Below the pieces are notes generated by a model, which saw only the letters and a program-made list of their open reading frames with translations, was not told the origin of the DNA and ran no database searches. A stretch of 56,855 nt of DNA, the filler included, from Basidiobolus meristosporus CBS 931.73 (lineage: Eukaryota; Fungi; Basidiobolomycota), in the NCBI GenBank assembly GCA_002104905.1. It is 3 parts of 3 records of this genome, joined end to end, with 100 filler letters (N's around TTAATTAATTAA, not from the genome) between each part and the next. Parts side by side here need not be neighbours in the genome. Positions count along the whole stretch, not along the records: positions 24,415 to 44,055 come from MCFE01001028.1; 2 more parts are not named here. One strand, 5' to 3'. A program made the translations under genes and the position numbers. Positions 3,921-44,055 of this stretch are shown here, piece by piece (within the stretch, counting starts at the first letter, position 1; each line of letters opens with the position of its first letter).

Positions 3921-4100
3921 TATTAATGAAGGCATTATTTCTCAAAGTCAGGGTAGACTTGTGGTAATGGAAATTATCCCATTACTACAATATCTCAAAA
4001 CTAATATTGCACTCATTTCTTTTGCAAAGCTCACAAGAATCCAATTTAAGTTCAACAAGAAACTACCACTTTTCTGTTGGAAAAGTCCCCTCAGAAGCCC

Positions 4101-24414: not shown

Positions 24415-24877
24415 TAACCTCTATATGGTAGATTGGTACTTGGCATGGTTCTTCCAACTGAACCTCTAGGTTAGTAAATAACTACCAAGTGACTGGCAAT
24501 TGGTTGGACGGATGGAAAAATATTTACACGTTCTTAGATGTGGAGCCACTTTACTGCTCACTTGCTAACAGTCATTATCTGGATATACTTGTTTTCCATA
24601 CCTGTTGTAGTTACTGACAGTACTCATCGAAAGTCCGAAAAAGTACGTGCTGTGTGTGAAGTAGGACTTTCATGTCGGCCTCGCCCCATTTAAAGGGAAA
24701 ACAGAGAGTGTTTACAGCAATGGTACATTGTAGTATTCATACATGTTTAGTCAGAACGAGCAAGTGCAACTTTTGTATAACCACTCCACATTAGCCCTGT
24801 CAAGAATCCACTATATCAGTCGCATAGAGGAATATGAAAGCTCTGTTTTGCTGAAGGTTAATTCTATAGAATTTGAA

Positions 24878-25160
24878 ATGATCAGCCAACTGAAAATTCC
24901 ATCCACCCTTCTAATGACTACACTGGCCATGAGTGCTCAACTGCAGTGCAGAGTCTCTCAGTTCAGCAAATACCTTATGTACAGATACACATCTTGGGAG
25001 CTCAAGTAAAAAATGAAAGGCATGCCCAAGACCGCGAACCTCATACCACAACAGATGACTTACAGTATGCAGAAGTAGTATCGAGAAGTGATGCTGGCTA
25101 TTCTCCCAAGGATCATACGACAGGCCGCAAAAGTGACTCGGCGAAGAATTCCAGGAAACT
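24878..25160 (+). pseudogene. Peptide-precursor copy P1 (remnant)
   Basis: MISQLKIPSTLLMTTLAMSAQLQ matches the P8 signal peptide; the rest is decayed. Confidence 0.75.
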
Positions 25161-25274
25161 GAATCATGAAGCTATTTGTTACTTTCTAAATGATTTGACA
25201 TTATGATTGATCGTTTAATGGATACAATGAGGTTAGATACAATGGCAGACACTATGGTGAAAACATAAAATACA

Positions 25275-26799
25275 CTAGTTCAGAGACATAGTAGCAAGGG
25301 AAGCCAAACTGAAGTAAACAAGAGCTGAACTTGGATTGAAAAGGCCAGCCCCATCACTAGTAGTACATATGTGGGTTCCATTTGCAGGCGGAGCTTTGGA
25401 ATCAAGGCAGGTGCTTTGCTTTGGGTCATCATCTTCAGTTTCAGTCTTGATCATGGCTTCACATTTGTAGGCCACGTTTGCAAGTGGCGCCTTAGGGTCG
25501 ATACAAGTGCTTTTCTTTGTGACGTTGAGTTCCACAGCCTCGAAGAGGTTACGCATCCAGTGGAATGTATAGTTAGTCTTGAAGCCGGGGTAGATCATGT
25601 TGACAGTGTCTTGCAGAGCAGCATCAGCCATCACAACGGCATTTCTGAACCAATCGGCATCGCCGCTCTTGGTTTGGGTTCTGTCTACACGGTATACTGC
25701 CTTGTTGCTGATGAACTTGTATTGTGTGTCAGCCACAGACAGGTTGTACAGGTGCAGTACCTCCTCAATGGTAGGGTAGGTGATGTTTAGGTCAGTGAAA
25801 TCCGTCCTGTCCACTAAAATGTCTGCATCTTCGATAACATTCAGCAAATCGGGCAACTCATACCCAGAGAACGAAATAGTATTGAACAGCCTAGAGTCAT
25901 CATGATCTTCTGTCAATTGAGCGCCACTATCCTGCATCAAATGACTTAAGTAGCCAGGAGTGCAGTGCATATAGGATATTGCGTCGATAGCATCGATCAA
26001 ATAGACCCAAGCAACCTTTGGCGTGGTTTTGTCCGCCATCAACTGTACCTCGTTTTTGATACAGTCATAATTGTCGTGAATGCTTTGTGTGACATTGTTG
26101 GCAACCCTCTCCAGGTTGAAGAAGACTGAATAAACCTTGAGTAGGTCTGATTTCGTAAGTGGACTGGCGGTTACCTCCTCATAGATGTTGATGGTTTTGT
26201 TTCCATCAACATCTATGTCTGGGGTAAAGTAGGCATCAACATTCTCGTCAAAACTGTTGTTGGCAATGCATGGAGACGTAAAGTACTGTGGATAGGCAGA
26301 TACGATACGCTCAACTAGACCAAGCGTCTTGAATGAGCCATGAGTTAGAATACGCCTCTGTATCACCTTTATGAAATTAGCCAACCGTGGAAACTTACAT
26401 CTAGATAGCTAGCTTCTGTAGGGCCAACATTACCCACTCTATTCAGTGGGATTTCAAAGAACTTGTCGTATTGGCTGATACGTTGCGGCTGAGGAGTCCC
26501 GCGCTGGTAGAGGATATATTTATCAGTACTTGAAAGCTGCACGTACTTCCAGTTCATTCTGTATTCAATACTACGCTCGGTTTCGATATTAACTAAACGA
26601 ACAGAAATGATCAGTAAGCTCTCGTAGTGCTGCTACGAATGAAATGGCTCATACATGTGACTTTGTCTGGGAAATAGTCGGTGGCTGGGTCATAATTCTC
26701 TACTGTGAATGATGGATCTACGATGTTCGAGGTGAGTACCTCACAAGAGACAGCAGTAAGGCCGAGGAAAGTAAGAGTGCAAATGCTGAAGCAACGCAT
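25275..26799 (-). CDS. S1: CBA1-like periplasmic-binding-protein-fold surface protein, signal peptide + GPI-type tail, ~463 aa, intact
   Basis: Exons 26799-26655, 26592-26399, 26327-25275 join in frame (intron 2 acceptor is AAG). Motifs DYFPDKV, YILYQRGTP, FFEIPL, TSPC, SVFFNLE, NKAVYRVD, DWF..AVV.AD.AL.D. Confidence 0.85.
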
Positions 26800-27573
26800 G
26801 TGTATTGATGTTGGATGTTTCGTGATGCACACTTAAATAATATCTGGCCATTGTACATTCGAACACATTGGCTGATCATCCAAAAATATGGACAAATAGG
26901 GCACTAACTATTGTGATCAAATTACTTACACAAGTAGCAAGATATATCATCTGGCCATTTACACATTGGAACACATTAGTTGGTCCACCGGAAACATCCC
27001 ACTAATTAGGATAGATTCCGTTGATGATGTGATGAAACAAGTTAGATACGTTTCTTTACGAGCCAATTGGGGCTACAAATCTTGCAAGCACCATTCGTGG
27101 ATGTCAAATAACCATCTATGGAAAATCAATTCACTGCACCGAGGAACAACTTCCAAAAAGCTGACAGTTAATGAGATAGATTGGATGAATATTATAGCCA
27201 TTGCCTTGGGTGAAAACGATTTGTAGTATAGCTTACAGCCTTCATCTAGATAAACGTCTACTTGCATATCTGAACTTATATATACACTAGCTGTGGCCCT
27301 CTGCGACTACTGGGGCTTTTGCTGATATTTATAACGACTCTGGCTCTTTATACCTCAGGAAAGACTACGTACAAGCCTACCCGTTAGACTTATTTTACTC
27401 CCCTCAACTCAAATCATAGTATACCTCAGCTTAGAAGAAAAGCTCTGATAATATGCCTTCCGGTATGACATATGTGCCATCTCATTAATCCTTCCCCGCT
27501 AACTAAGCATCAAGAGGTGCTCCCATCCCAACATAAAGCCTCTTGATAGATACGGCTGAACCCTAGCAAGTAC

Positions 27574-27820
27574 ATAATCCGAGAACTAGCAATCCCATTC
27601 ACACTCTCAATGGTAACCATGACAATGGGTGCAAAATTACATTTCACCATTGGTCCACCTCCTCTCAGCAACATTGCTATTAGGTTGACATTCACCGAAT
27701 CACTCAGACCAGCACAAACGCTATGGATAGGTTACTAAGTGAAATCATGATTACTAGGCTCGAGGACGTTTTGGGAGATACGGCTGGTACTACAACTGGG
27801 ACTACCTGTTTGATAAATAA
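27574..27820 (+). pseudogene. Peptide-precursor copy P2 (start lost, internal deletion)
   Basis: IIRELAIPFTL... followed by RGRFGRYGWYYNWDY and the conserved GATAAATAAATGAA 3' motif. Confidence 0.75.
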
Positions 27821-28032
27821 ATGAATCAGTAATTTCATATCGCTGTGATACTTGTCCCCAACACGCACACACTAATCTAGCTCAGAACTGTGCATAATGA
27901 CAAGACTTGAATCCAGATCGTGAAATCAATGAGATCGCCATAATGTTACGATATAAAATTATTTATGAGATTGCCTTCGATTATAACCGGTTACCTACAG
28001 TAATAGTTGCTATATTGGTGATGTGTAATGCA

Positions 28033-29468
28033 CTAGCCCAAATAGGCAGCTACAACAGAAGCCAACCCGAAGTAAACAAGAGCTGAGCTGGGACTGAAAA
28101 GGCTAACCCCATCGTTGGTATCAGTCTTGATCTTGGCGTCACACTTGTATGCCACATTTGCAAGTGACGCCTTAGGATCGATACAAGTGCCTTGCTGCGT
28201 ACCGTTCAGCTTCTCACCATCGAAAAGGTTACGCATCCAGTGGAAAGTGTAGTTACTCTTGAAGCCAGGGTGGACCATATTCACTGTGTCCTGGAGTGCA
28301 GCATCAGCCATCACAACAGCATTGAAGAACCAATCGGCATCGCCGCTCTTGGTTTGGGTTCTGTCTACGCGGTATACTGCCTTGTTGCTGATGAACTTGT
28401 ATTGTGTGTCAGCCACAGACAGGTTGTACAGGTGCAGTACCTCATCAACCTTAGGATAGGTAATGTTCAGGTGAATGAAACTTGACATATCTACTAAGAT
28501 GTCTGCATCCTTGATGACTTCTAGGACTTCATTCAATGGATTCCCAAAAGCTGAAATACCATTGTTTTCCTCAAACTCTATTATTGATTGTGCGCCACTA
28601 TCCCGCATCAGATAGTGTAGGTAGTTTGGAGTGTAGAGAACGTATGATATTCTTGAGGTTAAATAATCGATTATATAGACCCAAGCAATCTTTGGCGTTG
28701 TCTTAGCCGTCATCGACTGTACCTCGCTCTTGACGCAGTTATAGTTGCCCTCAATGTCCTGTGTGATCTTGTTGGCGGTCTTCTCCAGGTTAAAGAAAAC
28801 CGAATAAGTCTTGAGCAAATCCGACCTCGTGAGTGGCCTGGACATCGTCAACTCATAGATGTTGATGGTATCGTTCCTATCAGCATTTACACCTGGGGCA
28901 AAGTAGGCTCCAACATTTGACCCTGAATTGTTGTTGGCAATACACGGGGATGTAAAGTATTGTGGCTCGACAGATACGATACGTTCACCTAGGCCAAGCA
29001 TCTAGAATAAGCATGTCAGAAATTGCTACCAAATCGATGTTATCAAATGAGCCATCAATGGTAACTCACATCTAAAAAGCTAGCCGCGGTCGAATTTGCA
29101 ATGCTCACTCGATTCAGCGGGATTTCGAAGAACTTGTCATACTTGCTGACACGTTCCGGCTGAGGAGTCCCACGCTGGTAGAGGATGTACCTATTAGTCG
29201 GTGAAAGCTGCACATACTTCCAATTCATTCTGTATTCGATACGGCTCTCTGTTTCATTATTGACTAAGCGAACGGAATGCATTAGTAAGCCATCTTAGTG
29301 TGAATACAAATGAAGTGGCTCGTACATGTGACTTTGTCTGGGAAATAGTCGGTGGCTGGGTCGTAATTCTCCACCCTGAAGGATGGATCTACGATGTTCG
29401 AGGTGAGTACCTCAAGAGACAGCAGTAAGGCCAAGAAAAGTAAGAGTGCAAATGCTGAAGCAACGCAT
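28033..29468 (-). pseudogene. S2: CBA1-like copy with a 2-bp deletion in exon 1 (otherwise 435 aa)
   Basis: Exons 29468-29326 (143 nt instead of 145), 29263-29070, 29001-28033. TCTTGTGAG>TCTTGAG at ~29414 creates a stop. Could be an assembly error. Confidence 0.8.
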
Positions 29469-30454
29469 GTGTATTGATGTTGGATGTTTTGTGCTGCACA
29501 TTTAAATAATAACTGGCCATTGTACAATCGAATACCTTGGCTGCTTACCCAGAGCCATCGCGCAAAGTAGGATAGATCACACCAACTATTGTGCTCAAGT
29601 TAGTTACACAAGATCCTTTACCACGAGGCATGGAACGCTTTGTATGTAACAATGTTGCTTCCATTCCTTATCAGTGATGTTGTAGCAATTACATCACTAT
29701 CACTGGTGAATACCAAACAATCTCAATATGGTAAATTGGTGCTTGGCATCGCTTTTCCAAATAATGGGTAATTGGTTGGTCAGATTAAACAATATTCCAG
29801 TGTATAGTCACACACAAAATATCCTGTGGAGACAGTATATTTGACCACCATTTTTGGTTCTACTCTACTGTTCACTTGCCGACAGTTACCATTTCAAGTT
29901 CTTTATATCCAATTGTACTGATAGTATGCGTCGGCAATCTGATAATGTACAGGCGATGAGTGAGCAAATTCAAATCATTCATCATACCCTAAATGTAGAG
30001 GAAACTGAGTGCACCTACTGTGATGTTGTATTTATAAAAATTCAGGAAGAGAACTGTAGTTTGTGTAAATCCCCTTTTCATTTCACATGGCTGCTGAAAA
30101 GAATGCAGTCATATCAACTGAATTCAACTGGGTGCCAAGAACTTCCCTATATTCGGCTTCGTGATATATAAGCTGTGTATAACAAATATCTGAATCCCTA
30201 GTCTGATCATATGCTCATCAAAAAGACAGGATCGTGTGATAAAACGCTGGTATATTGAATAGAAAACAACGAATTCATCGGCATACCGTCACTCGTCTTT
30301 ACACCAGAGAATTGCCTGATGCAGATTAGCTCGCTAGGGATCATATACCGTTTTCATTAAACTGACTAGGCTTACCAAATCATATGATATATTCTAGTGC
30401 TATTACAAAAGTTTGTTCTGCTTTAAGCTAATGCCTCAGAACTCGAACTGGAAT

Positions 30455-30945
30455 ATGATCAGCCAACTAGCAAGCCCATTCCCTCTTCTACTAGCCACAC
30501 TGGTCATGGGCGCTCAGCTGCAGTCTACCGCTGGCCCAGCCTCCTTCAGAAAGGTGGCCCTTCAGCGAGTCCCTTAGCCCAGCACAGAATCGTAATGATG
30601 GATATACCATCCGGGAGTTCAAGTCAAACAAGAAGGAAGACGCATCAAGGATCATGAGCCTTATTCTCCAGCAGATGACGAACAGCATGCAAAAGAAGGA
30701 GTATACCCCACTCTCGAACATGCTTGACATAGATGAGGCGAAGACTGGTACCGCCTCCGATCCGAAGGATCCCACTCTAGGCAGCAAAGGTGGAGATGAA
30801 GGTGAGGGTATTTCTGAGATGAACCCCGAGGAAGCTGAGCTTTGGGGCAATTATGGTCGCTGGAGACGTGAATACTGGGAGATATGGTGGGTGTAGTCGG
30901 TGGGGAGGCAGAAGATATGGCGGGTGCTATGACTGGGACTGCTGA
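30455..30945 (+). pseudogene. Peptide-precursor copy P3 (two frameshifting deletions)
   Basis: MISQLASPFPLLLATLVMGAQLQ...PEEAELWGNYGRWRREYW.../RYGGCSRWGGRRYGGCYDWDC*. Confidence 0.85.
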
Positions 30946-31119
30946 TTTCATAAATAAATGAACCAGTCATTTCACTACATACTTGTGATGTTCCTTTCAT
31001 CATGCTGGCAGTGCGGCATCCATACATCCACACATATCTATCTCGGATCAAAGAACAAAGACGATTCTCGAAATGAAATCATGAAATGTTGTTAGATTAC
31101 CTTTGACATATAGGTTAGA

Positions 31120-31390
31120 TACAGTAATAGCCTGTACACAGGCTGAGTTTGTATTGCAAAGCCAAGACCATCACTGGTATTTATGCATCCAGTGGAAAAT
31201 AGAATCACCTCGACGCCGCAGCTCCCACAACTAATCTTACTGTTATTGTGAGTACGCCACGCTATTTGAATGTCAGGCTTAGTACTGGCGGTAATTGTCT
31301 GGTGTATTACTTCTCCATATATTCGTCGCAGCAACAATACAATCCAAAGCTTTTTCGCAGGTCATGATCTATCAGATGCGTGAACAACAC
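31120..31390 (-). pseudogene. S3: collapsed CBA1-like remnant
   Basis: FHWM and TSDGLGF fragments, next to a 3' UTR resembling those of S1 and S4. Confidence 0.55.
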
Positions 31391-31528
31391 TGAGATATGA
31401 ATATTCAATCCATCAAACCCCGTCAATCTTTGCTACAGACCCAATTATATTCCAAATATCTCTACTTGATTAAGGGTAGCTCATTGCCTTTGTCATGAGG
31501 GCCAATGCCGTGGAACCTGACCTGCGAT

Positions 31529-31850
31529 AAGATCAGCCAACTAGCAATCCCACTCAACCTCCTTGGCCACGGGTATTTCACTGCACTCCATAACTGACCA
31601 AGACACTCGAAAAGATATAGACACCGAACCTGTATCTACCGATTCATTTAGTCCTACACAAAACCCCGAGGACGGATATATCCTCCGGGAGTCCCAGTTA
31701 AGCAAGATATGTCGAGGATCATGAACCTTACTTACCATCAAATGACTCAAAGCATGCAGAAGGAATTTATAAATAGGAGAACTGATGATATCTCTGCTTC
31801 CAAGTATCCAACCATATACCACAAAAGCGACTCGAAGAATCCCAAGTAAA
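31529..31850 (+). pseudogene. Peptide-precursor copy P4 (remnant)
   Basis: AAG replaces ATG; ISQLAIPLNLL and SRIMNL...QMTQSMQK fragments. Confidence 0.7.
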
Positions 31851-32058
31851 CTGAATCATGAAGTTATTTGTTACTTTCTAAATAATTCGACATTATGGTT
31901 GATCGTTTGATGGATACAGTGAGGTTAGATACAGTAGCAGGCACTATGGTGAATACATAAATTACACTATTTCAGACAGGTAGCTGCAAGAGAAGCCAGC
32001 CCGAAGTAAGCAACAGTCGAACATAGATTAAAAAACCAATCCCATTGTTAGTAATTAT

Positions 32059-33402
32059 CTAGATCCTGGCATCACATTTGTAGGCCACGTTTGCAAGTGG
32101 TGCCTTGGGATCAATACAAGTGCTGTGCTTCGGACCATCGAGCTTCTCGTCGTCGAAAAGGCTACGCATCCAGTGGAAAGTGTAGTTACTCTTGAAGTCA
32201 TGGTGAGCCATATTCACTGTGTCTTGCAGAGCAGCATCAGCCATCACAACTGCATTGAAGTACCAATCGACATCACCGCCCTTGGTTTGTATTCTATCTA
32301 CACGGTATACTGCCTTGTTGCTGATGAACTTATATTGTGTGTCAGCCACGGACAGGTTGTATAGTTGCAATACCTCATCAACCGTAGGGTAGGTAATGTT
32401 CTGGTGAATGAAATCTGATATTTCCACTACAATGTCTGCGTCCTTGATGACATCTAGGAACTCATTCAAATTTTTATATCCGTGAGCCAAAGCGCCGTTA
32501 TCTTCGTCAAACTCTATTAATTGTGCGCCACTATCCTGCATCAGAGAGCCCAAGTAGCTCGTTGTGGAGTAAACGTAGTACACATCCGAGCCGTGATATT
32601 TGTAATAATCGGATCTATAGATCCAAGCAATCTTTGGCATTGTCTTGGCCTTCATCGACCCTACCTCGCTCTTAACGCAGTTATAGTTGTCCTCAATCTT
32701 CCGTGTGATCTTATTGGCGGTCTTCTCCAGGTTGAAGAAGACAGAATAAATTTTGATTAAATCTGATCTCACAAGTGGACTGTACCACGGATCCTCAGTA
32801 ATGTGGATGGTTTTGTTCCCAACGATATATCTGTCTGGGGAAAAAAGTGCATCAACGTTTACCCCTGAATTACTATTGGCAATGCACGGGGATGTGAGGT
32901 ATTGTGGTTCGGCAGACACGATACGCTCACCTAGGCCTAGCATCTATGATAACCATGTGTCAGGAAATGCTTCTAAATCATTCGTATTAGTAAGAACTCA
33001 CATCAAGATAGCTAACCGCAGTCGAGTTCACAACTTCCACTCGATTCAGCGGGATTTCAAAGAACTCGTCGTATTGGCTGATTCGCTCTGGTTGAGGAGT
33101 CCCACGCTGGTAGAGGATATACTTGTGAATACTTGAAAGCTGCACATACTTCCAGTTCATTCTGTATTCGATACGGCTCTTTGTTGCATTGTTAACTAAA
33201 TGGACGGAATGCATTAGTAGGTTATCTTAGTGTGAATACAAATGACGTGACTTGTACATGTGACTTTGTCTGGGAAATAGTCGGTGGCTGGGTCGTAATT
33301 CTCCACCCTGAAGGATGGATCTACGATGTTCGAGGTGAGTACCTCACAAGAGACAGCAGTAAGGCCGAGGAAAGTAAGAGTGCAAATGCTGAAGCAACGC
33401 AT
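32059..33402 (-). CDS. S4: CBA1-like copy, ~407 aa, stop before the GPI signal
   Basis: Exons 33402-33258, 33195-33002, 32943-32059 in frame. AAG>TAG at 32059-32061; a decayed GPI-tail sequence follows. Confidence 0.78.
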
Positions 33403-33934
33403 GTGTATTGATGTTGGATGCTTCGTGCTGCACACTTAAATAATAACTGCAATCTGATCATTGTACATTCGAACACATTGGCTGATCATCCAGAACTATC
33501 GCAGAAATTAGGATAGATTGCACCAACTGTTGCGCCCCAAATAGTTACACGAGATCATTTATCGCGAGGAAAAGAACACTCATATGTAACACTGTTGCTT
33601 CCACTCCTTGTCAGTGATGATGTAATAGCCACATCGCTATCACTCGTGGATACTAAACAACCTCTATATGGTAGATTGGCGCTTGGCATTTCTGTTCCAA
33701 ATGGAAGACGGGCGGACAGAACAAGATTCCGGTGGATAGCCACATAGAGAATAACATATGGGGACTGCATATTCAGCCATCGTTTTTGGGCCTACTTCAC
33801 TGCTCTCTTGCTGACAGTTGTCATCTCGAAACTTGAAATACCTCGGCTAAGACTTCACTATATTCAACTTCATGATATCTCAGCCATATAGAGTGTCAGA
33901 CCTGGCATTGACGGTAAAAATACTTAGACTTGTA

Positions 33935-33970
33935 AGGTAGAAGGTATAGCGGGCTTCATAAATAAATGAA
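33935..33970 (+). pseudogene. Peptide-precursor trace P5 (3' end only)
   Basis: GGTAGAAGGTATAGCGGG...CATAAATAAATGAACC matches the 3' ends of P3 and P8. Confidence 0.5.
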
Positions 33971-34159
33971 CCAACAATTATTTCATACCTATACATCCAC
34001 ATATATCTATGCCGGACCAGTGAGCAAAGACAATGCTTGAGGAGAAGTTCGAAATTGTAGGGATGAACTACAATGATATTACATTCAACTATTTATTAGA
34101 TAACTTGAGACTAAAATAGCTTGATGCTGTGATAGACAGTATAGTGAAGACGCGTAATA

Positions 34160-34608
34160 CCATAGCCCAGATAGATGGCTACAATAGAAGCTGAAAACGA
34201 GTAAACAAGAGCCGACCTTGAGTTGAAAAAGCCAACTCCATCATTAGTATCACACTTATAAACCAAGAAGCTGAAGTGGTACCATATTGCATTGAGAAGG
34301 CCGAGGAGTGCCGCGCTGATAAAAGATTCAAGTCTAATAGAAAAGCTGTAGATACTTCCAGCTCTTTTGGTAATAAATACGATTCTCCATTGGGGCGTCA
34401 ACTAAATGAATGGAATGGATCAGTAAGCTCACTTAGCGTTGCTACGAATTAAGTGACTCATACATGTGACTTTGTCTGGGAAATTGTTGGAGGCTGAGTC
34501 GTAAAGCTCTATCTTGAATGCTGGATCTACAATGTTGGAGGTGAGTTTCTTACAAGAAACGGTAGTAAGGCCGAGGAAAGGCAGAATGTAGGTGCATAAG
34601 CACCGTAT
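34160..34608 (-). pseudogene. S5: CBA1-like remnant with a large internal deletion
   Basis: ATA for ATG, recognisable exon 1 (FPDKVT) and intron 1, part of exon 2 fused to YKCDTNDGVGFFNSRSALVY. Confidence 0.85.
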
Positions 34609-34940
34609 GTGTACTGATGTTGTATGTAGTATGCTGAACACTTACATAACATCATAGCCTTCAAACACATTAGCTGATCCACAAGAAACGTCGGACAATT
34701 TAGACATCAACTGCTGTGATCAAATGAGCTACATGAGTTTCTTTAACTATAGGCTAAGATCATATGCAAGTGACACTGTTGTTTGTTTTCCTTATCAGTG
34801 GTGTTACGATCTCCAAATCAATACTACTGTTGGATAACAATCTCTATATGGTAGATCCGTACTTGACATTACTCTCTCAAATGAAAGAAATTTTGCTGGT
34901 CAGATAGAATGATATTATAGTGTGTAGTCGGATGCACCGC

Positions 34941-35290
34941 TCAAGTCAAGCAAGAAGGAAGACGCGTAACGAACCATGAGCCTTATTTACCACCAAACGA
35001 CAAGCAGCATGTACCAGAAGGAGTATTCTCCACTCTCAAACATACTTGACATTTAAAAGACAAGAGCTCATTCAGTCCTCGATACAGGGATACCACCATC
35101 GACGACAAAAGTTGAGCGGAGGATAAGGGCAATTTAGAGAGAATTTTAAGGAAACATTACTAAGTGGGGAAGATACGGTCGCTGGAGACATGGTTACTAG
35201 GTTTGAGGACGCCACGGGATATATACTAACTATGCTCGGTGGGAAGGTCGAAGGGTATGGCAGGTTCAAAGACTGCTAGTTTATAAGTGA
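34941..35290 (+). pseudogene. Peptide-precursor copy P6 (3' half)
   Basis: KSSKKEDA, KEYSPLSNILD and KWGRYGRWRHGY fragments with stops. Confidence 0.75.
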
Positions 35291-35516
35291 ACAAGCCAGT
35301 AATTCGGTATAATCACTGTGATACTCTTTCGAACATGCCTAGCAATACACTCACACAACACCAACTTAGAGTTGTGAATAATGACAAGACTTGAAGCCAG
35401 ATCATGAAATCAATGAGATCGACATAATGTTATGACTTACAATTATTTATTAGACTGCCTTCGATTATAATAGGTTACTTACAGTAATGGTAGACGTATT
35501 GATGATGTGTAATGCA

Positions 35517-36952
35517 CTAGCCCAAATAGGCAGCTACAACAGAAGCCAACCCGAAGTAAACAAGAGCTGAGCTTGGACTGAAAATAGCTGACCCCATCGT
35601 TAGTATCAGTCTTGATCTTGGCATCACACTTGTAGGCTACATTCACTAGTGGTGCCTTGGGATCAGTACAAGTGCTTTGCTGCGTGCCATTAAGCTTTTC
35701 ATCCATCGAAGAGGTTACGCATCCAGTGGAAAGTTGTAGTTACTCTTGAAGCCAGGGTGGACCATATTCACTGTGTCTTGCAGTGCAGCATCAGCCATCA
35801 CAACGGCATTGAAGAACCAATCGGCATCGCCACTCTTGGTTTGGGTTCTGTCTACGCGGTATACTGCCTTGTTGCTGATGAACTTGTATTGTGTGTCAGC
35901 CACAGACAAGTTGTACAGTTGCAGTACCTCATCAACGGTAGGGTAGGTGATATTTTGGTGAATGAAACTTGACATCTCCACTATGATGTCTGCATCCTTG
36001 ATGACTTCAAGGAACTCATTTAATGAATATCCGAATGCTGTAATACTATAATTTTCCTCGAACTCCATCATTAGTTGAGCGCCACTATCCTTCGTCAAAG
36101 AGTATAAGTAGTTCGGAGTGTAGTAGACGTAGGATATGTTCGAGGAGAAGGTGTAGGCATCGGTTATGTAGACCCAAGCAATCTTTGGCGTTGTCTTAGC
36201 CGTCATCGATTTTACCTCGCTCTTGACGCAGTTGTAGTTGCCTTCAATGTCCTGTGTGATCTTGTTGGCAGTCTTTTCCAGGTTGAAGAAGACCGAATAA
36301 ACTTTGAGTAGATCTGATCTCATAACTGGAGTGTACCACGTATACTCAACAAGGTTGATGGTTTTGTTTCCATCGGCATATATGGATGGGGAAAAAAGTG
36401 CATCAACATTTGCACTCGAACTGTTGTTGGCAATGCACGGGGATGTAAAGGATTGTGGCTCGACAGATGCGATACGTTCACCTAGGCCTAGCATCTAGGA
36501 TAACCATGTGTCAGACAATGCTTCCAAATCATTCATGCCAGTAGCAACTTACATCTAGATAGCTAGCCCAGTCGAATTTGCAATGCTCACTCGATTCAGC
36601 GGGATTTCGAAGAACTTGTCATACTTGCTGACACGTTCCGGCTGAGGAGTCCCGCGCTGGTAGAGGATGTACCTATTAGTAGATGAAAGCTGCACATACT
36701 TCCAATTCATTCTGTATTCGATACGACTCTCAGTTGCATTGTTAACTAAACGGATGGAATGCATTAATACGCTATCTCAGTGTGAATACAAACGAAGTGA
36801 CTCGTACACGTGACTTTGTCTGGGAAATAGTCGGTGGCTGGGTCGTAATTCTCCACCCTGAAGGATGGATCTACGATGTTCGAGGTGAGTACCTCACAGG
36901 AGACAGCAGTAAGGCCGAGGAAAGTAAGAGTGTAAAAGCTAAAGCAACGCAT
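35517..36952 (-). pseudogene. S6: CBA1-like copy with several single-base indels
   Basis: Exon 2 is 193 nt (1-bp deletion at ~36568); extra bases at ~35735, ~35700 and ~35585 relative to S2/S7. Confidence 0.8.
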
Positions 36953-37053
36953 GTGTATTGATGTTGGATGTTTCGTGCTGCACACTTAAATAATAACTGG
37001 CCATCGTACATTCGAACATATTGGCTGATCATCCAGAACCATGGCACAAAATA

Positions 37054-37430
37054 GGATAGATCACACCCACTATTATGCTCAAATTAGTTACACGAGTTCA
37101 CATACTTCGAGGCATCGAACATTCGTATGTAACAGTGTTGCTTCCACTCCTTGTCAGTGGTGTTGCAACAGCTACATAACTAACACCGGTGGACACCAAA
37201 CAATCTCAATATGGTAGATTGGCGCTTAGCATAGATATATGGATAGATCACGCCCACTATTATGCTCAAATTAGTTACGCGACATCATTTACCACGAGGG
37301 AAAGGACACTCGTATGTAACACTGTTGCTTCTATTCCTTGTCAGCAGTGTTGCAACAGCCGCGACGCTATCACTAGTGGATGCTAAACAATCTCAATATG
37401 GTAAATTGGCGCTTGGCATAGCTCTTCCAA
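37054..37430. repeat. 187-bp tandem duplication in the S6 upstream region
   Basis: GGATAGATCAC... recurs at 37054 and 37241. Confidence 0.85.
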
Positions 37431-37954
37431 ATTACAAATGATAGGTAATTGGCTGGTCCCACGGAACAAAATACCAGTGTATAGTCGCATGCAGAACAAT
37501 AGATGGAGACAGCGTATTCGGTCACCATTTTTGGCTCTACTCTACTGTTCGCTTAGTGACAACTACAATTTTGAAAGCTATACACCTCACAAACATCGGC
37601 TACGTGCACTGACTGAGCATGTTTTGTCAGGAAGAGAACTGTAGTTTGTATATGACCACTTTTCATTTCACCTTAGCAAGCGTACCTACCAAATTCCATC
37701 TGGTGCGGAAATATTTCGGCCGAGACTTCACTATATTTATTTTCATGATATATTAGCCGTATAGTGCAAATCTTGGAGTCTTCAGTCCGATCATGTGTTC
37801 ATCATAAGTGCTGGTGCATTAAACAGAAAACAACCAATTCATCAGACTACCGTTACTGACTTTCGCTCAAGAGAGTTGTCTAGCTCATAGTGGCTTATTG
37901 GAGCTTATTTCTTTGTTCTGCTAAGAGCTGCTGTCTCAGAATCTGACCTGGAAT

Positions 37955-38465
37955 ATGATCGGACAACTGGCAATCCCATTCTCCTTCATAATAGCCACAC
38001 TGGCCATTGGTGCTCAACTGCAGTTTACTACTGACTCAGCTGCTCCTGGGAACGTGGCCAGATGATCAACATCCACCGAATTACTTAGTCCAGCAAAGAA
38101 TTCTGGGAACGGATACACCGCCCAGGAGTTCAAGTCATAAAAGAAGGAAGATGCGTAAAGGATCATGAACCTTATATCCCAGCGGACGACGAAGAGTATG
38201 CCCAACAAAGAGTAACTCTAGCATACTTGATATGGATAAGATGGGGCTAATCCGGTCACTGATTCTCAGGAGCCGGCCATGGACCTCAATAGTGGAGATG
38301 AGGCGAGGCTGGCTTAGTGAGGAATGCCGAGGAAGGGTGACTAAGTGGGGAAGATACGGATGCTAGATTCGAGGACGCTTTGGGGGATACGACAATAATA
38401 GTCGGTGAGGAGGTAAAAGATATGACGGGCGCTACAACTGGGACGACCAGTTCGATAAATAAATG
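37955..38465 (+). pseudogene. Peptide-precursor copy P7 (multiple stops)
   Basis: MIGQLAIPFSFIIATLAIGAQLQ...VAR*, later KWGRY and RGRFGGY fragments. Confidence 0.85.
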
Positions 38466-38642
38466 AAATTATACGCCCGTACAAATTTAGCTCAGAGCTG
38501 TGAATAATGACAAGACTTGAATCCAGATCGTGAAATCAATGAGATCGTCGTAATGTTATGACATACAATTATTTATTAAACTGCCTTCGATTATGAAAAG
38601 TTACTCACAGTAATAGTTGATGTATTGGTGGTGTGTAATACA

Positions 38643-40071
38643 CTAGCCCAAATAGGCAGCTATAACGGAAGCCAACCCGAAGTAAACAAGAGCTGAGTTG
38701 GGATCGAAAAAGCTGACCCCATCGTTGGTATCAGTCTTGATCTTGGCATCACACTTGTAGGCTACATTTGCGAGTGGCGCCTTGGGATCAGCACAAGTGC
38801 TTTGCTGCGTGCCATTAAGCTTTTCACCATCGAAGAGGTTACGCATCCAGTGGAAAGTGTAGTTACTCTTGAAGCCAGGGTGGACCATATTCACTGTGTC
38901 TTGCAGAGCAGCATCAGCCATCGCAACAGCATTGAAGAACCAATCGGCATCGCCGCTCTTGGTTTGGGTTCTGTCTACGCGGTATACTGCCTTGTTGCTG
39001 ATGAACTTGTATTGTGTGTCAGCCACAGACAAGTTGTACAGTTGCAGTACCTCATCAACGGTAGGGTAGGTGATATTTTGGTGAATGAAACTTGACATAT
39101 CCACTACAATATCTGCATCCTTGATGACTTCAAGGAACTCATTCAATGGATGTCCCGTAGCTGTAGGAGTACTACTTTCCTCAAACTCTACCAGTAATTG
39201 TGCGCCACTATCCTGCGTCAGATAGTGTAGGTGATTCGGAGTGTAGTGAACGTATGCTCTCTCCGAGGGTGAATCATCGAATACATAAACCCAGGCAATC
39301 TTTGGGGTAGTCTTGGCCGTCATCGATTGTACCTCACTCTTGACGCAGTTATAGTTGTCCTCAATCTCTTGTGCGACCTTGCTGGCAGTCTTCTCCAAGT
39401 TGAAGAAGACCGAATAAACTTCGAGTAGATCTGATCTCATAACTGGAGTGTACCACGTGTACTCAACAATGTTGATGGTTTTGTTTCCATCAGCATATAT
39501 GGATGGGGAAAAAAGTGCATCAACATTTGCACTCGAACTGTTGTTGGCAATGCACGGGGACGTGAAGGATTGTGGCTCGACAGATGCGATACGCTCACTT
39601 AAGCCTAGCATCTAGAATAAACCATGTGTCAGACAATGCTTCCAAATCATTCGTGTCATTAGTAACTTACATCTAGATAGCTAGCCGCAGTCGAGTTCGC
39701 AATGTCCACTCGATTCAGCGGGATTTCAAAGAACTTGTCGTACTTGCTGACACGTTCCGGCTGAGGAGTCCCACGCTGGTAGAGGATGTACGTATCAGTC
39801 TGTGAAAGCTGCACATACTTCCAGTTCATTCTGTAGTCAATACTACGCTTGGTGTCATTGTTAACTAAACGGATGGAATGCATTAATACGCTATCTTATG
39901 GTAAATACAAATGGCGTGGCTCGTACATGTGACTTTGTCTGGGAAATAGTCGGTGGCTGGGTCGTAATTCTCCACCCTGAAGGATGGATCTACGATGTTG
40001 GAGGTGAGTACCTCACAGGAGACAGCAGTAAGGCCGAGGAAGGTAAGAGTGTAGATGCTGAAGCAACGCAT
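38643..40071 (-). CDS. S7: CBA1-like surface protein, signal peptide + GPI-type tail, 435 aa, intact
   Basis: Exons 40071-39927, 39864-39671, 39611-38643 with canonical GT-AG introns. C-terminus TNDGVSFFDPNSALVYFGLASVIAAYLG*. Confidence 0.88.
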
Positions 40072-40172
40072 GTGTATTGATGTTGGATGTTTCATGCTGC
40101 ACACTTAAATAATAACTGGCCATCGTACATTCGAACATATTGGCTGATCATCCAGAACCATAGCACAAAATA

Positions 40173-40550
40173 GGATAGATCACACCAACCATTATGCTCA
40201 AATTAGTTACACGAGTTCCTATACTTCGAGGCATCGAACATTCGTATGTAACAGTGTTGCTTCCACTCCTTGTCAGTGGTGTTGCAATAGATACATAACT
40301 AACACTGGTGGACACCAAACAATCTCAATATGGTAGATTAGCGCTTGGCATAGATATATGGATAGATCACACCAACTATTATGCTCAAATTAGTTACGCG
40401 ACATCATTTACTACGAGGTAAAGAACACTCGTATGTAACACTGTTGCTTCCACTCCTTGTCAGCAGTGTTGCAACAGCCGCGACGCTATCACTAGTGGAT
40501 GCTAAACAATCTCAATATGGCAAATTGGCGCTTGGCATAGCTCTTACAAT
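40173..40550. repeat. 187-bp tandem duplication in the S7 upstream region
   Basis: Same duplication as at 37054 (units at 40173 and 40360). Confidence 0.85.
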
Positions 40551-41073
40551 TTACAAATGATAGGTAATTGGTTGATCCCATAGAACAAAATACCAGTGTA
40601 TAGTCGCATACAGGACAACGTGCACCTACTGCAACGTTTTATGTATGTTGGCATACTTTGTCAAGAAGGGTGCTGCGGTTTGTATATGTCCCGTTTTTAT
40701 ATCATCTCGACAGTCGTACCTACTGAATTCCTTCTAGTGTGCAAACACTTCGGCCAAGACTTCACTATATTCAACTTTATGATATATCAGCTGTATAGAG
40801 CAAATCTCTGAGTCTCCAGTCCGATCATGTGTTCACCATAATGACAGAATGGTGGGATAAAATGCTGATGCACTAAATAGAAAACAGTCAATTCATCAGA
40901 CTACTGTCACTCTTCTTTACACCAGAGATTTCCCTGATTCGGAGTAGCTCGCTAGAGCTCATATACTGTTTTCATTAAACTAGCTAGGACAACCAAACCA
41001 CATGATGTATTCTGGTGTCAATATAAAATCTTTGGCCTGCTGAAGGCTAAGGCTACAGAACCTGGCCTGCAGT

Positions 41074-41592
41074 ATGATCAGACAATTAGCAATCCCATTC
41101 ACCCTCCTAATAGCCACACTGGCCATGGGTGCTCAACTGCAGTCCATCGCTGTTCCAACTGCTCCTGGGAACGTGGCCACCAACTCTGTATCCACCGAAT
41201 CACTTGGTCCAGCACAGAATCCTGGGGACGGGTATACCGTCCGGGAGTATAAGTCAAACAAGAAGGAAGACGCATCAAGGATCATGAACCTTATTCTTCA
41301 GCAGATGACAAACAGCATGCAAAAGAAGGAGTATCCTCCACTCTCGAACATGCTCGAAATGGATGACGCGCGAACTAGAGCTGCCTCAGAACCAAAGAAA
41401 CACACCGTTGAGACCAGGAGTGGAGGTGAGGGTGAGGATATCTCTGAGAAGAATCCCGAGGAAGCTGAGCTGTAGGGAAGATTTGCTCGCTCAAGACGTG
41501 GATACTGGGGCCGAGGACGCTTCGGGAGATATGGTGGGTATGGTTGGTGGGGAGGTAGAAGGTACAGCGGATGCTACGACTGGGACTGTTGA
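41074..41592 (+). CDS. P8: secreted precursor (signal peptide, acidic pro-region, G/R/W/Y-rich cationic C-terminal peptide); one in-frame TAG at 41473-41475
   Basis: 133 aa to the TAG, then in frame GRFARSRRGYWGRGRFGRYGGYGWWGGRRYSGCYDWDC*. P3 has TGG at the aligned codon, giving 172 aa if Trp is restored. Confidence 0.7.
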
Positions 41593-41942
41593 TTTGATAA
41601 ATAAATAGTTGCACAGGTATTGGCAGTGTGCGGAATCGTCCATTCCCAATATAGATCTGGAGATGCAATCACGCACGGACTGTTGACATCAGCATGTCTT
41701 TTATATTTGGGGGAGTAAATCGCGAAGACTGGTACTGCCTTTTACTATACTGCCTTTCACCACCCAATGTGCAACCCAAGTATATAGATAGATTCGACGT
41801 TATCAACATGAAACACGATATGTCAATGGTATGAAAATATATATAGATTTATGAGAAAATCAAATTTCACATGAAATAAACTGTATATACTGTGCAAAGA
41901 AAAGTATTTGTCGGAAATATATGCGATTGCTTCACCGTCAAG

Positions 41943-42840
41943 TTAGACCATGGAGACGAATCTTCCAGCGCCAGGCATCATGGAGGTGGAGGTTCTCTCT
42001 TGACCTTTGAAGTAACCGGTGGCTGTGAGGAACACGTTAGACGGTGTCTTCCAATGCAAAAAGGACAAGCCTAGTATATTCTTACCGTAGAAGATAGCAG
42101 TGAAGGTCAATGTCAATGCGGGAATGAACAGGACGTTGAAATGTTGGATCAGAGAAAGCCACATGACGATGGCGAAGCTAGAGATCAATTCAGCGGTTGG
42201 TAAATTAATTTTGTAGTAAGATTCGAGCTATTCTTACACTAAGTAGACACCAGCTCTGATATGGCTACCCGAGAGCTTCTTGATGAAGTTATCACTAAAA
42301 TAAGTCAATTCCCTGTTGAGAAATCATGCTCGTTCATAGCATCTTGCTTGTACATATACTTACAACGTAGGGCTAGTAGGACAACACTGCAATATTTTGT
42401 AATCGTTTGGTAAGCTTCCACGCCATGGCATATCTGAGGGAAAGTCAAACATACCTTCGTCAAGAAAGAGATCTCCATGAAAATGATCAAAACAGTGAAA
42501 ACGCTAGAGTTTCGACGGGTTAGTCTTGTTCGACCTGAGTGGCCCGAGCCGAGGGATAGCGACAACACTTACAAGCCGAGAATAGAGAAAATCGGCACTC
42601 TGAGGAATTCAACGATCCCGAGGATGATCAACACTAAATGGGCAAAATCCAGGACGGTTAGTGATTCCCAGACAATGTGGGACGCTCAAGCTGGTACGTA
42701 CGAAGGGCAGACAGCATAGCAACCCTAACGCGAAGTTAAGCTTGGTTAGTGCAACTCCAGCGACAGTAAGGTGCCGAGGACAAATACCATTGTGCATAGA
42801 CCGAGAATTTCCCGGACTTCAGATCGTCCATAAAACTCAT
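41943..42840 (-). CDS. TVP18: Golgi membrane protein Tvp18 (multi-exon)
   Basis: Spliced translation MSFMDDLKSGKFSVYAQWVAMLSALLLIILGIVEF...IFMEISFLTKCCPTSPTFDNFIKKL...IRAGVYL...YATGYFKGQER matches the Tvp18 pattern DLKSxxFSVYxxW / CPxSxxF. Confidence 0.88.
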
Positions 42841-43194
42841 GTTTGTCGCGTTTGGAGTTGGTGGAGTAGGGTAGGGTAGGGTAGGTGCACGGAATCGAAC
42901 AAACCAGAACTAAAGGTTTGAGTTACGAGATGGTCGGTCTTTATAGCGCAATAATTTATCAATTCCTCGAGCCAATGGACAATAGGTAAATATTTGGAGT
43001 TGGGGATTCTAAATGGGAACCTTGGATTCCGACAAATTAATCATCAATCGACTCTTGACTTTAATCATTTCCAGATAAAGGCCTTTCCAAGTATCACATG
43101 AGCTCAGATAAAGCCTCGCTAAAATTAGATGATGGATTGTGCCGTTGTTCAGCCAAACGCTCGACAAACAATGGATTCTAATAGAACAGGAGGG

Positions 43195-44055
43195 TTATAG
43201 ATAGCGGCCATTCTTTTTGACTGATGCCAGGTAGCATGCGATATTGATCAAGGTGACTATGCTACTCCCGGCGGTAATCTTGGTAAACCAAAGCCTCCAT
43301 CTTCCCGAGGCGAGCGCTGAAACAGTGAAGTACAAATGGCTGAAATTGGCCAGACTGAAGGCCAGCAGGATCGCCTTCTGCGCAGTGATGTCTTTGATCC
43401 TGAAGGATAAGAGCGACAGCAAAGCCCAGGCAGCGTGTACCCCGCCCAGGAATTTGACCGTGTCAATAGCATACGGGGGAACCCCACCCTTTCCACCAGA
43501 CACTACGGCATTCATAAGGAGAGCCTTTCGTGGGCGGGAAAGGTAATAAACAGCCAAGCCATGCCACAACAGGTTGACAGCAAAGGCGGTGTAGTTCGTA
43601 TGGGTCAGATCTAGTAATGCTTGGAAGACGTGGCGCAAAAATCGTTTGGTGACTGATGGATTTTCCGCTGGAGGAATCCTGGATTATGGGCGAGTCCCTG
43701 TTTGTGCTCGGTCGATGATTCGGGTTGGGATTTGGTTGGATGGTGGTTGTTTCTGTGTGATTCCTGTGTTAGGTGGATTGTTGTTTCTACGTGAATCCTG
43801 GATAGCTTTGTTCCACATGTCCTCAAATGCCTCCTGCTCCTTGGTGGTTGCTTCGTTCTTCCTTGCGTCCCTCCCTTCCGAAGCTGGCTTTTTCTCGGGG
43901 ATTTTCTGCCATTTTCACCCACTCCTTGTCGGCCTTCGGCGACGGCTCCTTCTTGTTTTGAGAAGGGGTGCCCTGTTCTTTATCGAGATGATCTTCATTT
44001 TCGCAGGAAGCCGCCGGATCCTGCGGGATGGCGGTCTCCTCGACCTCGGAAGGTG
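43195..44055 (-). CDS. Partial gene: low-complexity N-terminal part and C-terminal ~4-TM domain, function unknown; 5' end off the contig
   Basis: ORF 43195..43638 has about four hydrophobic segments and no ATG. Upstream charged and Pro/Gln-rich reading frames are broken by apparent frameshifts near the contig end. Confidence 0.55.

Follow-up and report, generated by a model that had tools for sequence, protein, structure and literature searches.

Introduction

Cobalamin acquisition protein 1 (CBA1) has been described in diatoms and Chlamydomonas (Sayer et al. 2023, PMC10828217). The Chlamydomonas protein, CrCBA1, combines a signal peptide with a single C-terminal hydrophobic helix and carries a W-F-E triad which adjoins the modelled position of B12; fungal homologues of CBA1 have been listed but not studied (PMC10828217). 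Here we analyse a locus of the fungus Basidiobolus meristosporus CBS 931.73 in which a CBA1-like gene, named S, alternates in a tandem array with a gene for a small, putatively secreted protein, named P. The array lies on the 19.6-kb scaffold MCFE01001028.1, which was taken whole as positions 24415-44055 of the window, i.e. the whole stretch of 56,855 nucleotides that was analysed and along which all positions are counted. The original prediction was that the two genes may form a co-amplified functional module, with the equal alternative that the peptide gene is a hitchhiker. Our results indicate that the amplification was probably driven by S, with P as its passenger.

S is homologous to the described CBA1 proteins through the family collected by a CBA1 hidden Markov model (CBA1-HMM), and it shares with them the signal peptide, a BtuF-like class III body and the C-terminal hydrophobic helix. 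It differs from them in its host, a fungus, in its number, with a tandem array of at least 6-7 copies as opposed to 1-2 genes, and in its residues, the array copies having Phe or Arg for the Glu of W-F-E and Arg for the Cys of a YQCG motif. The bacterial class III binding proteins (PhuT/ShuT, RhuT, CeuE, YiuA, FhuD, IsdE, BtuF) consist, like S, of two lobes and a long helix, and their alignment to the S model with VIA-align reaches Z scores of 15-17.6 over 230-267 residues, whereas sequence identity is only 8-16%. Unlike these proteins, S is eukaryotic, is predicted to be membrane-tethered and has no ATP-binding cassette (ABC) transporter partner in the locus.

For P, the nearest described systems are the precursors of cationic antimicrobial peptides with an anionic propiece and the glycine- and aromatic-rich peptides of invertebrates. 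P resembles them in its layout, which begins with a signal peptide, continues with an acidic pro-region (net charge -7 to -12) and closes with 39 residues of charge +7, but no sequence relative of P was found outside two scaffolds of one genome, and P lacks a dibasic site at the junction and is predicted to be mostly disordered. Finally, the locus as a whole resembles birth-and-death tandem arrays with passenger genes, in that a two-gene unit is repeated, S is under purifying selection, P degenerates and some of the P lesions are older than later duplications; this is a general pattern, from which we note no specific difference.

Results

S copies are retained next to decaying P copies

We mapped the copies with blastn and nhmmer, using profiles of both genes (Table 1). 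The order along the scaffold is Pa, Sa, Pb, Sb, Pc, (S trace), Pd, Sc, (P trace), Sd, Pe, Se, Pf, Sf, Pg, which gives six clear copies and one trace of S and seven clear copies and one trace of P. Both weak traces sit exactly where the alternation of P and S predicts them and, once they are counted, the seven S and eight P copies of the original prediction are borne out.

The same array is found on a second scaffold of the assembly, MCFE01000530.1 (61.7 kb), whose final 17.6 kb, L001, are collinear with window positions 25913-43405; an artefact confined to a single contig can thus be discounted. The two sequences are about 99% identical, with a drop to 93-95% around Pc, and the differences of ~1% are mostly transitions. 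We treat this second array as a sister haplotype or a very recent duplicate and refer to it as the sister scaffold.

Considering both scaffolds together, five S copies are intact or nearly so. Sf is also intact on the sister scaffold, and the sister allele of Sb is intact with 435 amino acids. Se differs from its sister allele by extra bases at 35535, 35586, 35702 and 35733 and by missing bases after 36501 and 36568, and that sister allele is open save for a shift in the final few codons. Sa carries an additional duplicated, Cys-containing segment ahead of its C-terminal tail, and an upstream ATG at 40095 is peculiar to Sf. The S copies evolved under purifying selection: pairwise comparison of the five long copies gives a ratio of nonsynonymous to synonymous divergence (dN/dS) of 0.20-0.35, at a dS of 0.23-0.65. 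Amino-acid change is concentrated at codons about 136-165 and 211-270, where the ratio of nonsynonymous to synonymous differences per site (pN/pS) is 0.5-0.7, and the second of these segments begins just after a pocket tryptophan. Synonymous divergence is unusually low in exon 1 and at codons about 301-330, a possible sign of gene conversion.

P, on the other hand, is broken in six of its seven clear copies on both scaffolds, leaving a single intact P in the array. Pa and Pb are truncated, and Pe and Pf have accumulated many lesions each. The lesions that Pe and Pf have in common imply that P had been disabled before the duplication of units e and f. Thus most S copies were kept while adjacent P copies of the same age were wrecked, an asymmetry which argues for selection on S.

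The intact copy is the sister allele of Pg (L001:1814-2332, minus strand), a called gene which runs uninterrupted over 172 amino acids. The original prediction would have been undermined by the lack of any intact P allele, and on this point it holds, with the allele present on the sister scaffold. Read-through of the Pg stop by splicing was considered and rejected, because the donor there is poor and the sister allele reads straight through that codon. A second intact P, P0153, also of 172 amino acids, lies at MCFE01000530.1:24724-25242 (L006:10001-10519), ~20 kb from the array. It is 74% identical to the intact Pg allele, with the homology confined to the coding region, and no S-like sequence was found within 10 kb of it.

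S is transcribed and spliced

To be read as presence and not as absence, the run data consist of contigs and include one RNA run. Exon 3 of Sf is matched in three sequencing runs, X1, X2 and X3. X1 and X2 have coverage throughout and look like DNA runs. X3 looks like an RNA run: the S exons are covered at a depth of 50-195, and the spacers have zero depth. One joint in X3 skips exactly 39612-39670, with CT..AC ends, and this stretch corresponds to intron 2 of the minus-strand gene Sf. S is transcribed and spliced. The X3 contig over exon 3 agrees with the sister allele of Sf at the six letters that tell this allele apart. Over the P genes, the depth in X3 is 0 at Pg and 1-6, i.e. faint, at Pf.

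S is a member of the CBA1 family by sequence

All full copies of S consist of three exons separated by GT..AG introns. Once spliced, Sa and Sf translate into sequences that read as having an N-terminal signal peptide and a single C-terminal hydrophobic tail, the latter missing from Sc. Its sequence places S in the eukaryotic CBA1 family, and the earlier description of S as a periplasmic-binding-protein-like surface protein of this family is supported by a database match, P0032, by the motifs and by the fold. A HMMER library scan with P0002, the database model of Sc, returned 739 relatives, 31 of them below 1e-30. The nearest named relatives come from early-diverging fungi (Basidiobolus, Calcarisporiella, Umbelopsis, Mortierella, Coemansia, Mycoemilia, a chytrid and an aphelid) and also include Acrasis and Heterostelium. 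The match of P0002 to P0032 of Heterostelium album has an E-value of 7.5e-31, and the start of the P0032 sequence is that of the Heterostelium entry in the published table of CBA1-HMM hits (PMC10828217).

The FFNxE, PxVAW and DWF motifs of S and a later Asp are collinear with CrCBA1 and PtCBA1, the Chlamydomonas and Phaeodactylum sequences of that table. S itself carries FFNLE and PKIAW, and in an alignment of 67 relatives (A1) the matching columns are conserved in 61-66 and 50-52 of the 67 sequences; the Trp of W-F-E and the later Asp are conserved there too. Of the W-F-E residues, S keeps the Trp and the Phe/Tyr; the Glu, found in 52 of the 67, is replaced by Phe or Arg in the array copies, in which Arg also takes the place of the consensus Cys of YQCG. 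The altered Glu and Cys positions lie in the A1 columns of P0002 residues 78-80 and 340-342.

The AlphaFold2 model of S (predicted local distance difference test, pLDDT, 87.5; predicted template modelling score, pTM, 0.88) adopts a class III binding-protein fold and matches proteins of that class with a Foldseek E-value of 1e-8 and a VIA-align Z of up to 17.6. It is also matched by AlphaFold database clusters named Fe/B12 periplasmic-binding domain. Pfam gave no match for the S exons or the full S models, and a sub-threshold Peripla_BP_2 match for the paralogue P0005 only; a PDB sequence search gave no match.

In the phylogenetic tree, all Basidiobolus paralogues form one clade, within which the array copies are a tight subclade (100/100). 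The sister of this subclade is P0005, a single-copy gene of B. meristosporus, and the B. ranarum proteins fall outside. In a 90%-cluster search, array-type S was found in B. meristosporus only.

CBA1-like domains were also seen inside much longer proteins (AlphaFold database clusters A0A1Y2D0J3 and A0A139AJA2; sequence matches P0006, P0008 and P0009), one of them annotated with a family 3 G-protein-coupled receptor profile and one with a peptidase A1 domain. Among the matches of 800-1500 amino acids, some hold up to four CBA1-like stretches. In other eukaryotes the domain may be a ligand-sensing module.

P encodes a small and selectively constrained protein

On the evidence of its sequence, P is a real but orphan gene for a small, predicted secreted protein. 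The original prediction described it as the precursor of a cationic secreted peptide, and such a layout is confirmed: the intact Pg allele is composed of a 24-residue signal-like start, a 109-residue acidic part and a 39-residue cationic end, with net charges of +1, -7 and +7, respectively (+1, -12 and +7 in P0153). The 39-residue end contains 28% Gly and 31% aromatic residues, is Arg-rich and has two Cys five residues apart at its very end. No dibasic site is found at the junction between pro-region and peptide, and Arg-Arg pairs occur within the cationic part. P is plausibly antimicrobial-peptide-like, by analogy with such precursors.

Between the two intact P copies dN/dS is 0.195 at a dS of 0.77, with 0.18 in the pro-region and 0.16 in the cationic end. 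These low and similar values in both parts indicate that P is a constrained protein-coding gene. A homology search with the whole protein and with its C-terminal part matched only the P copies on the two scaffolds of this genome; Pfam gave no match for P, and the best score of an Atlas search with P, 0.81, is at chance level. The predicted structure has a pLDDT of 50 and is largely disordered, apart from a helix at residues 63-84 that is predicted with moderate confidence.

Geometry of the array and its flank

The periods of the array range over 2.7-3.9 kb. Direct-repeat families with start-to-start spacings of 2671-2680, 3932-3942, 3550 and 3117-3126 bp were found, and repeat finding shows each part of the unit in five to six copies. 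The repeated unit had been put at 3119 bp for the last two P copies; this figure is exact, and the repeat spacings agree with it. P is encoded by the plus strand and S by the minus strand, so that their tails face each other, about 180 bp apart for Pf/Sf, and the convergent arrangement originally described is right. The 5' end of each S is opposite the 5' end of the next P, and neighbouring units do share a divergent region, as had also been proposed, in the form of a spacer of ~970 bp. Since the first 45 bases of the scaffold (24416-24460) match the spacer element described next, the array probably extends beyond the left end.

A 187-bp element, located ~100 bp upstream of the S start, is doubled in the spacers of the two youngest units and single in older units (33454-33689, 29642-29762). 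Its role may be that of a promoter element, or it may serve as a substrate for unequal exchange. An Rfam search found no family in the piece, hence no riboswitch. Outside the array, the right flank carries ordinary genes at 41943-42850 and 43195-43638, both on the minus strand.

Table 1 Window positions of the array, its gene copies and its surroundings on MCFE01001028.1 (aa, amino acids)
Feature	Position	Strand	State and remarks
Tandem array, P (+) and S (-) alternating	24415-41640		left end cut by scaffold edge; right end at ~41640
Pa	24784-25162	+	decayed fragment (blastn/nhmmer)
Sa	25275-26799	-	intact, 463 aa; exons 26799-26655, 26592-26399, 26327-25275; GT..AG introns
Pb	27497-27836	+	decayed fragment (blastn/nhmmer)
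Sb	28033-29468	-	2-bp deletion in exon 1 (after 29412), frame shifted after codon 18
Pc	30352-30998	+	full-length, disabled; 11-bp and 17-bp deletions, both also on sister scaffold
S trace	31136-31183	-	weak, between Pc and Pd; nhmmer E 0.02
Pd	31471-31854	+	truncated (nhmmer)
Sc	32059-33402	-	open for 407 aa, then early stop; same state on both scaffolds; database model P0002
P trace	33934-33976	+	weak, between Sc and Sd; nhmmer E 0.0012
Sd	34112-34687	-	fragment; exon 1 and part of exon 2 fused to C-terminal tail by large internal deletion
Pe	34899-35309	+	decayed; nonsense codon and 2-bp insertion in common with Pf
Se	35517-36952	-	six single-base insertions or deletions relative to sister allele; JGI model P0001
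Pf	37909-38497	+	decayed, full-length; same two lesions as Pe
Sf	38643-40071	-	intact, 435 aa from conserved start; exons 40071-39927, 39864-39671, 39611-38643
187-bp element	40173-40540		two tandem copies in divergent S-P spacer; same pair also at 37054-37421
Pg	41074-41592	+	best-preserved P; single in-frame stop 41473-41475; cationic 39 codons 41476-41592
Right flank	41641-44055		unique, outside array; sister counterpart holds gene for Cg6151-P family membrane protein

Discussion

Our results fit a tandem amplification which was driven by S, or at least retained for S. The identities of the two genes and their co-amplification, as put forward in the original prediction, stand, whereas their functional coupling is not supported wherever the checks named with that prediction could be applied, and the hitchhiker alternative fits best. 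The coupled scheme, in which the peptide would damage or bind bacteria and the adjacent receptor would capture the released cobalamin or chelate, the pair being amplified together, has real points in its favour: the strict alternation of P and S shows that both were copied together, P is itself under purifying selection with the charge layout of an antimicrobial peptide precursor, and on the sister scaffold both members of the last pair, Sf and Pg, are intact and have a divergent spacer in common. However, only one of the 7-8 array copies of P is intact, compared with about 5 of the 6-7 copies of S; all others are disabled, and dead P copies were duplicated further. The pairing is also absent from the other loci examined: no P-like sequence was found in the retrieved flanks of four other CBA1-like loci (L002-L005; two of B. 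meristosporus and two of B. ranarum), and P0153, the only other intact P, stands alone. Co-regulation receives no help from the RNA contigs, in which S exons are present and Pg has zero depth. We therefore regard a functional two-gene module as very improbable.

A neutral history, in which a recombination-prone repeat was amplified with no selection on copy number and both genes undergo birth-and-death decay, would account for the damage to S itself (Sb, Sd, Se, the truncated Sc and one S trace), and the 187-bp spacer repeats could have promoted unequal exchange. It sits poorly, though, with a dN/dS of 0.2-0.35 for S over dS values of up to 0.65, with the open state of most S copies on the sister scaffold and with the contrast to neighbouring P copies of the same age, so we consider it unlikely.

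The decay might also be largely a problem of the assembly, the 19.6-kb scaffold being a poorly polished alternative haplotig of the array on MCFE01000530.1 whose private stops and frameshifts are unreal. The lesions private to MCFE01001028.1, at 29412, 35535-35733, 36501, 36568 and 41474, affect Sb, Se and Pg and are not present on the sister scaffold, and at many such sites, including 36501, 36568 and 41474, the Pg stop, the DNA contigs of X1 and X2 carry only the sister letters. Against an origin in the assembly, the ~1% of differences between the scaffolds, mostly transitions, speaks for real divergence; the private insertions and deletions are clustered in Se, with none in Sd, Pf, Sf or Pg; and both scaffolds carry the major lesions of P, those in Pc, Pe and Pf. 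Poor polishing as the main source of the decay is thus a doubtful explanation, if one to be taken more seriously than the previous two, and if true it would alter the copy counts and leave the main conclusion as it is.

Several observations nonetheless weigh against an S-driven amplification with P as passenger, or against its reading in terms of B12. The private lesions in Sb, Se and Pg may belong to a specific or decaying allele or may be local assembly errors. The Sf-Pg pair on the sister scaffold, with its common spacer of ~970 bp, makes co-regulation possible, and the zero depth over Pg comes from contigs that can show presence only. Pf and Pg are 69% identical, compared with a neutral expectation of about 80% from the synonymous sites of S; P being more diverged than these sites, gene conversion among S copies may blur the history of the duplications and their relative ages. 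As to the ligand, the Glu of W-F-E is Ser, Phe or Thr in the other Basidiobolus paralogues, and is thus replaced in every paralogue examined. The top solved matches to the S model (PhuT/ShuT, RhuT, CeuE, YiuA) bind heme or siderophores, and BtuF was not found among the 50 best structural matches. With binders of heme and siderophores ranking ahead of BtuF, no ligand can be assigned to S from the fold.

Under S-driven amplification, which we still prefer, unequal crossing-over would have repeatedly duplicated a ~3 kb segment that happened to hold both genes. Selection would have acted on S and kept most of its copies open. S would most likely reside at the cell surface or in endomembranes, its C-terminal tail being a glycosylphosphatidylinositol (GPI) signal or a membrane anchor, and would most likely capture a corrinoid, a related tetrapyrrole or a metal chelate made by gut bacteria. 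P would have been carried along, with one or two copies sufficing and the rest decaying. The array and its gene structures, the family, fold, transcription and splicing of S, the selection statistics, the decay of P and the solitary P are shown by the data; the ligand and surface location of S, the function of P and the driver of the amplification are what we infer here.

More speculatively, the last unit, whose Sf and Pg are both intact in the sister array, could function as a pair, in which the peptide lyses gut bacteria and the receptor harvests corrinoid or tetrapyrrole; a milder version would have the S copies as diversified receptors for different gut cobamides. We see this idea as a long shot.

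A different CBA1-like gene, P0015, was observed beside four or five genes for secreted proteins in both orientations (L005:12200-18500, MCFE01000495.1). These proteins contain repeats rich in Gly, Asp and Tyr, with units like DYDDDYDGHGKGKKYGGGGGG, and are not P-like by BLAST. The locus is a second case of a CBA1-like gene adjoining genes for glycine-rich secreted proteins.

Early-diverging fungi have been recognised only recently as users of B12, and Entomophthoromycotina are reported to keep four to seven cobalamin-related families (PMC8085122). For B. meristosporus, the values of a supplementary table, its headings aside, are non-zero in 7 of 9 columns of cobalamin-related families (Orlowska et al. 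2021, PMC8085122). The presence of these families in B. meristosporus and in Entomophthoromycotina makes a need for corrinoid uptake plausible.

Taken in this context, the locus represents a lineage-specific tandem expansion of the CBA1 family in a gut-dwelling fungus, probably with an orphan secreted-peptide gene as passenger. P would encode a small secreted protein which is under selective constraint and laid out like an antimicrobial peptide; the evidence does not tie it to S. Several expressed CBA1-like copies appear to have been kept, differing next to the predicted pocket, and Sa, Sc, Sf and the sister alleles of Sb and Se are concrete candidates for binding cobalamin, other cobamides, heme or siderophores. 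The variant with diversified cobamide receptors, if true, would be the first candidate B12-uptake system in fungi.

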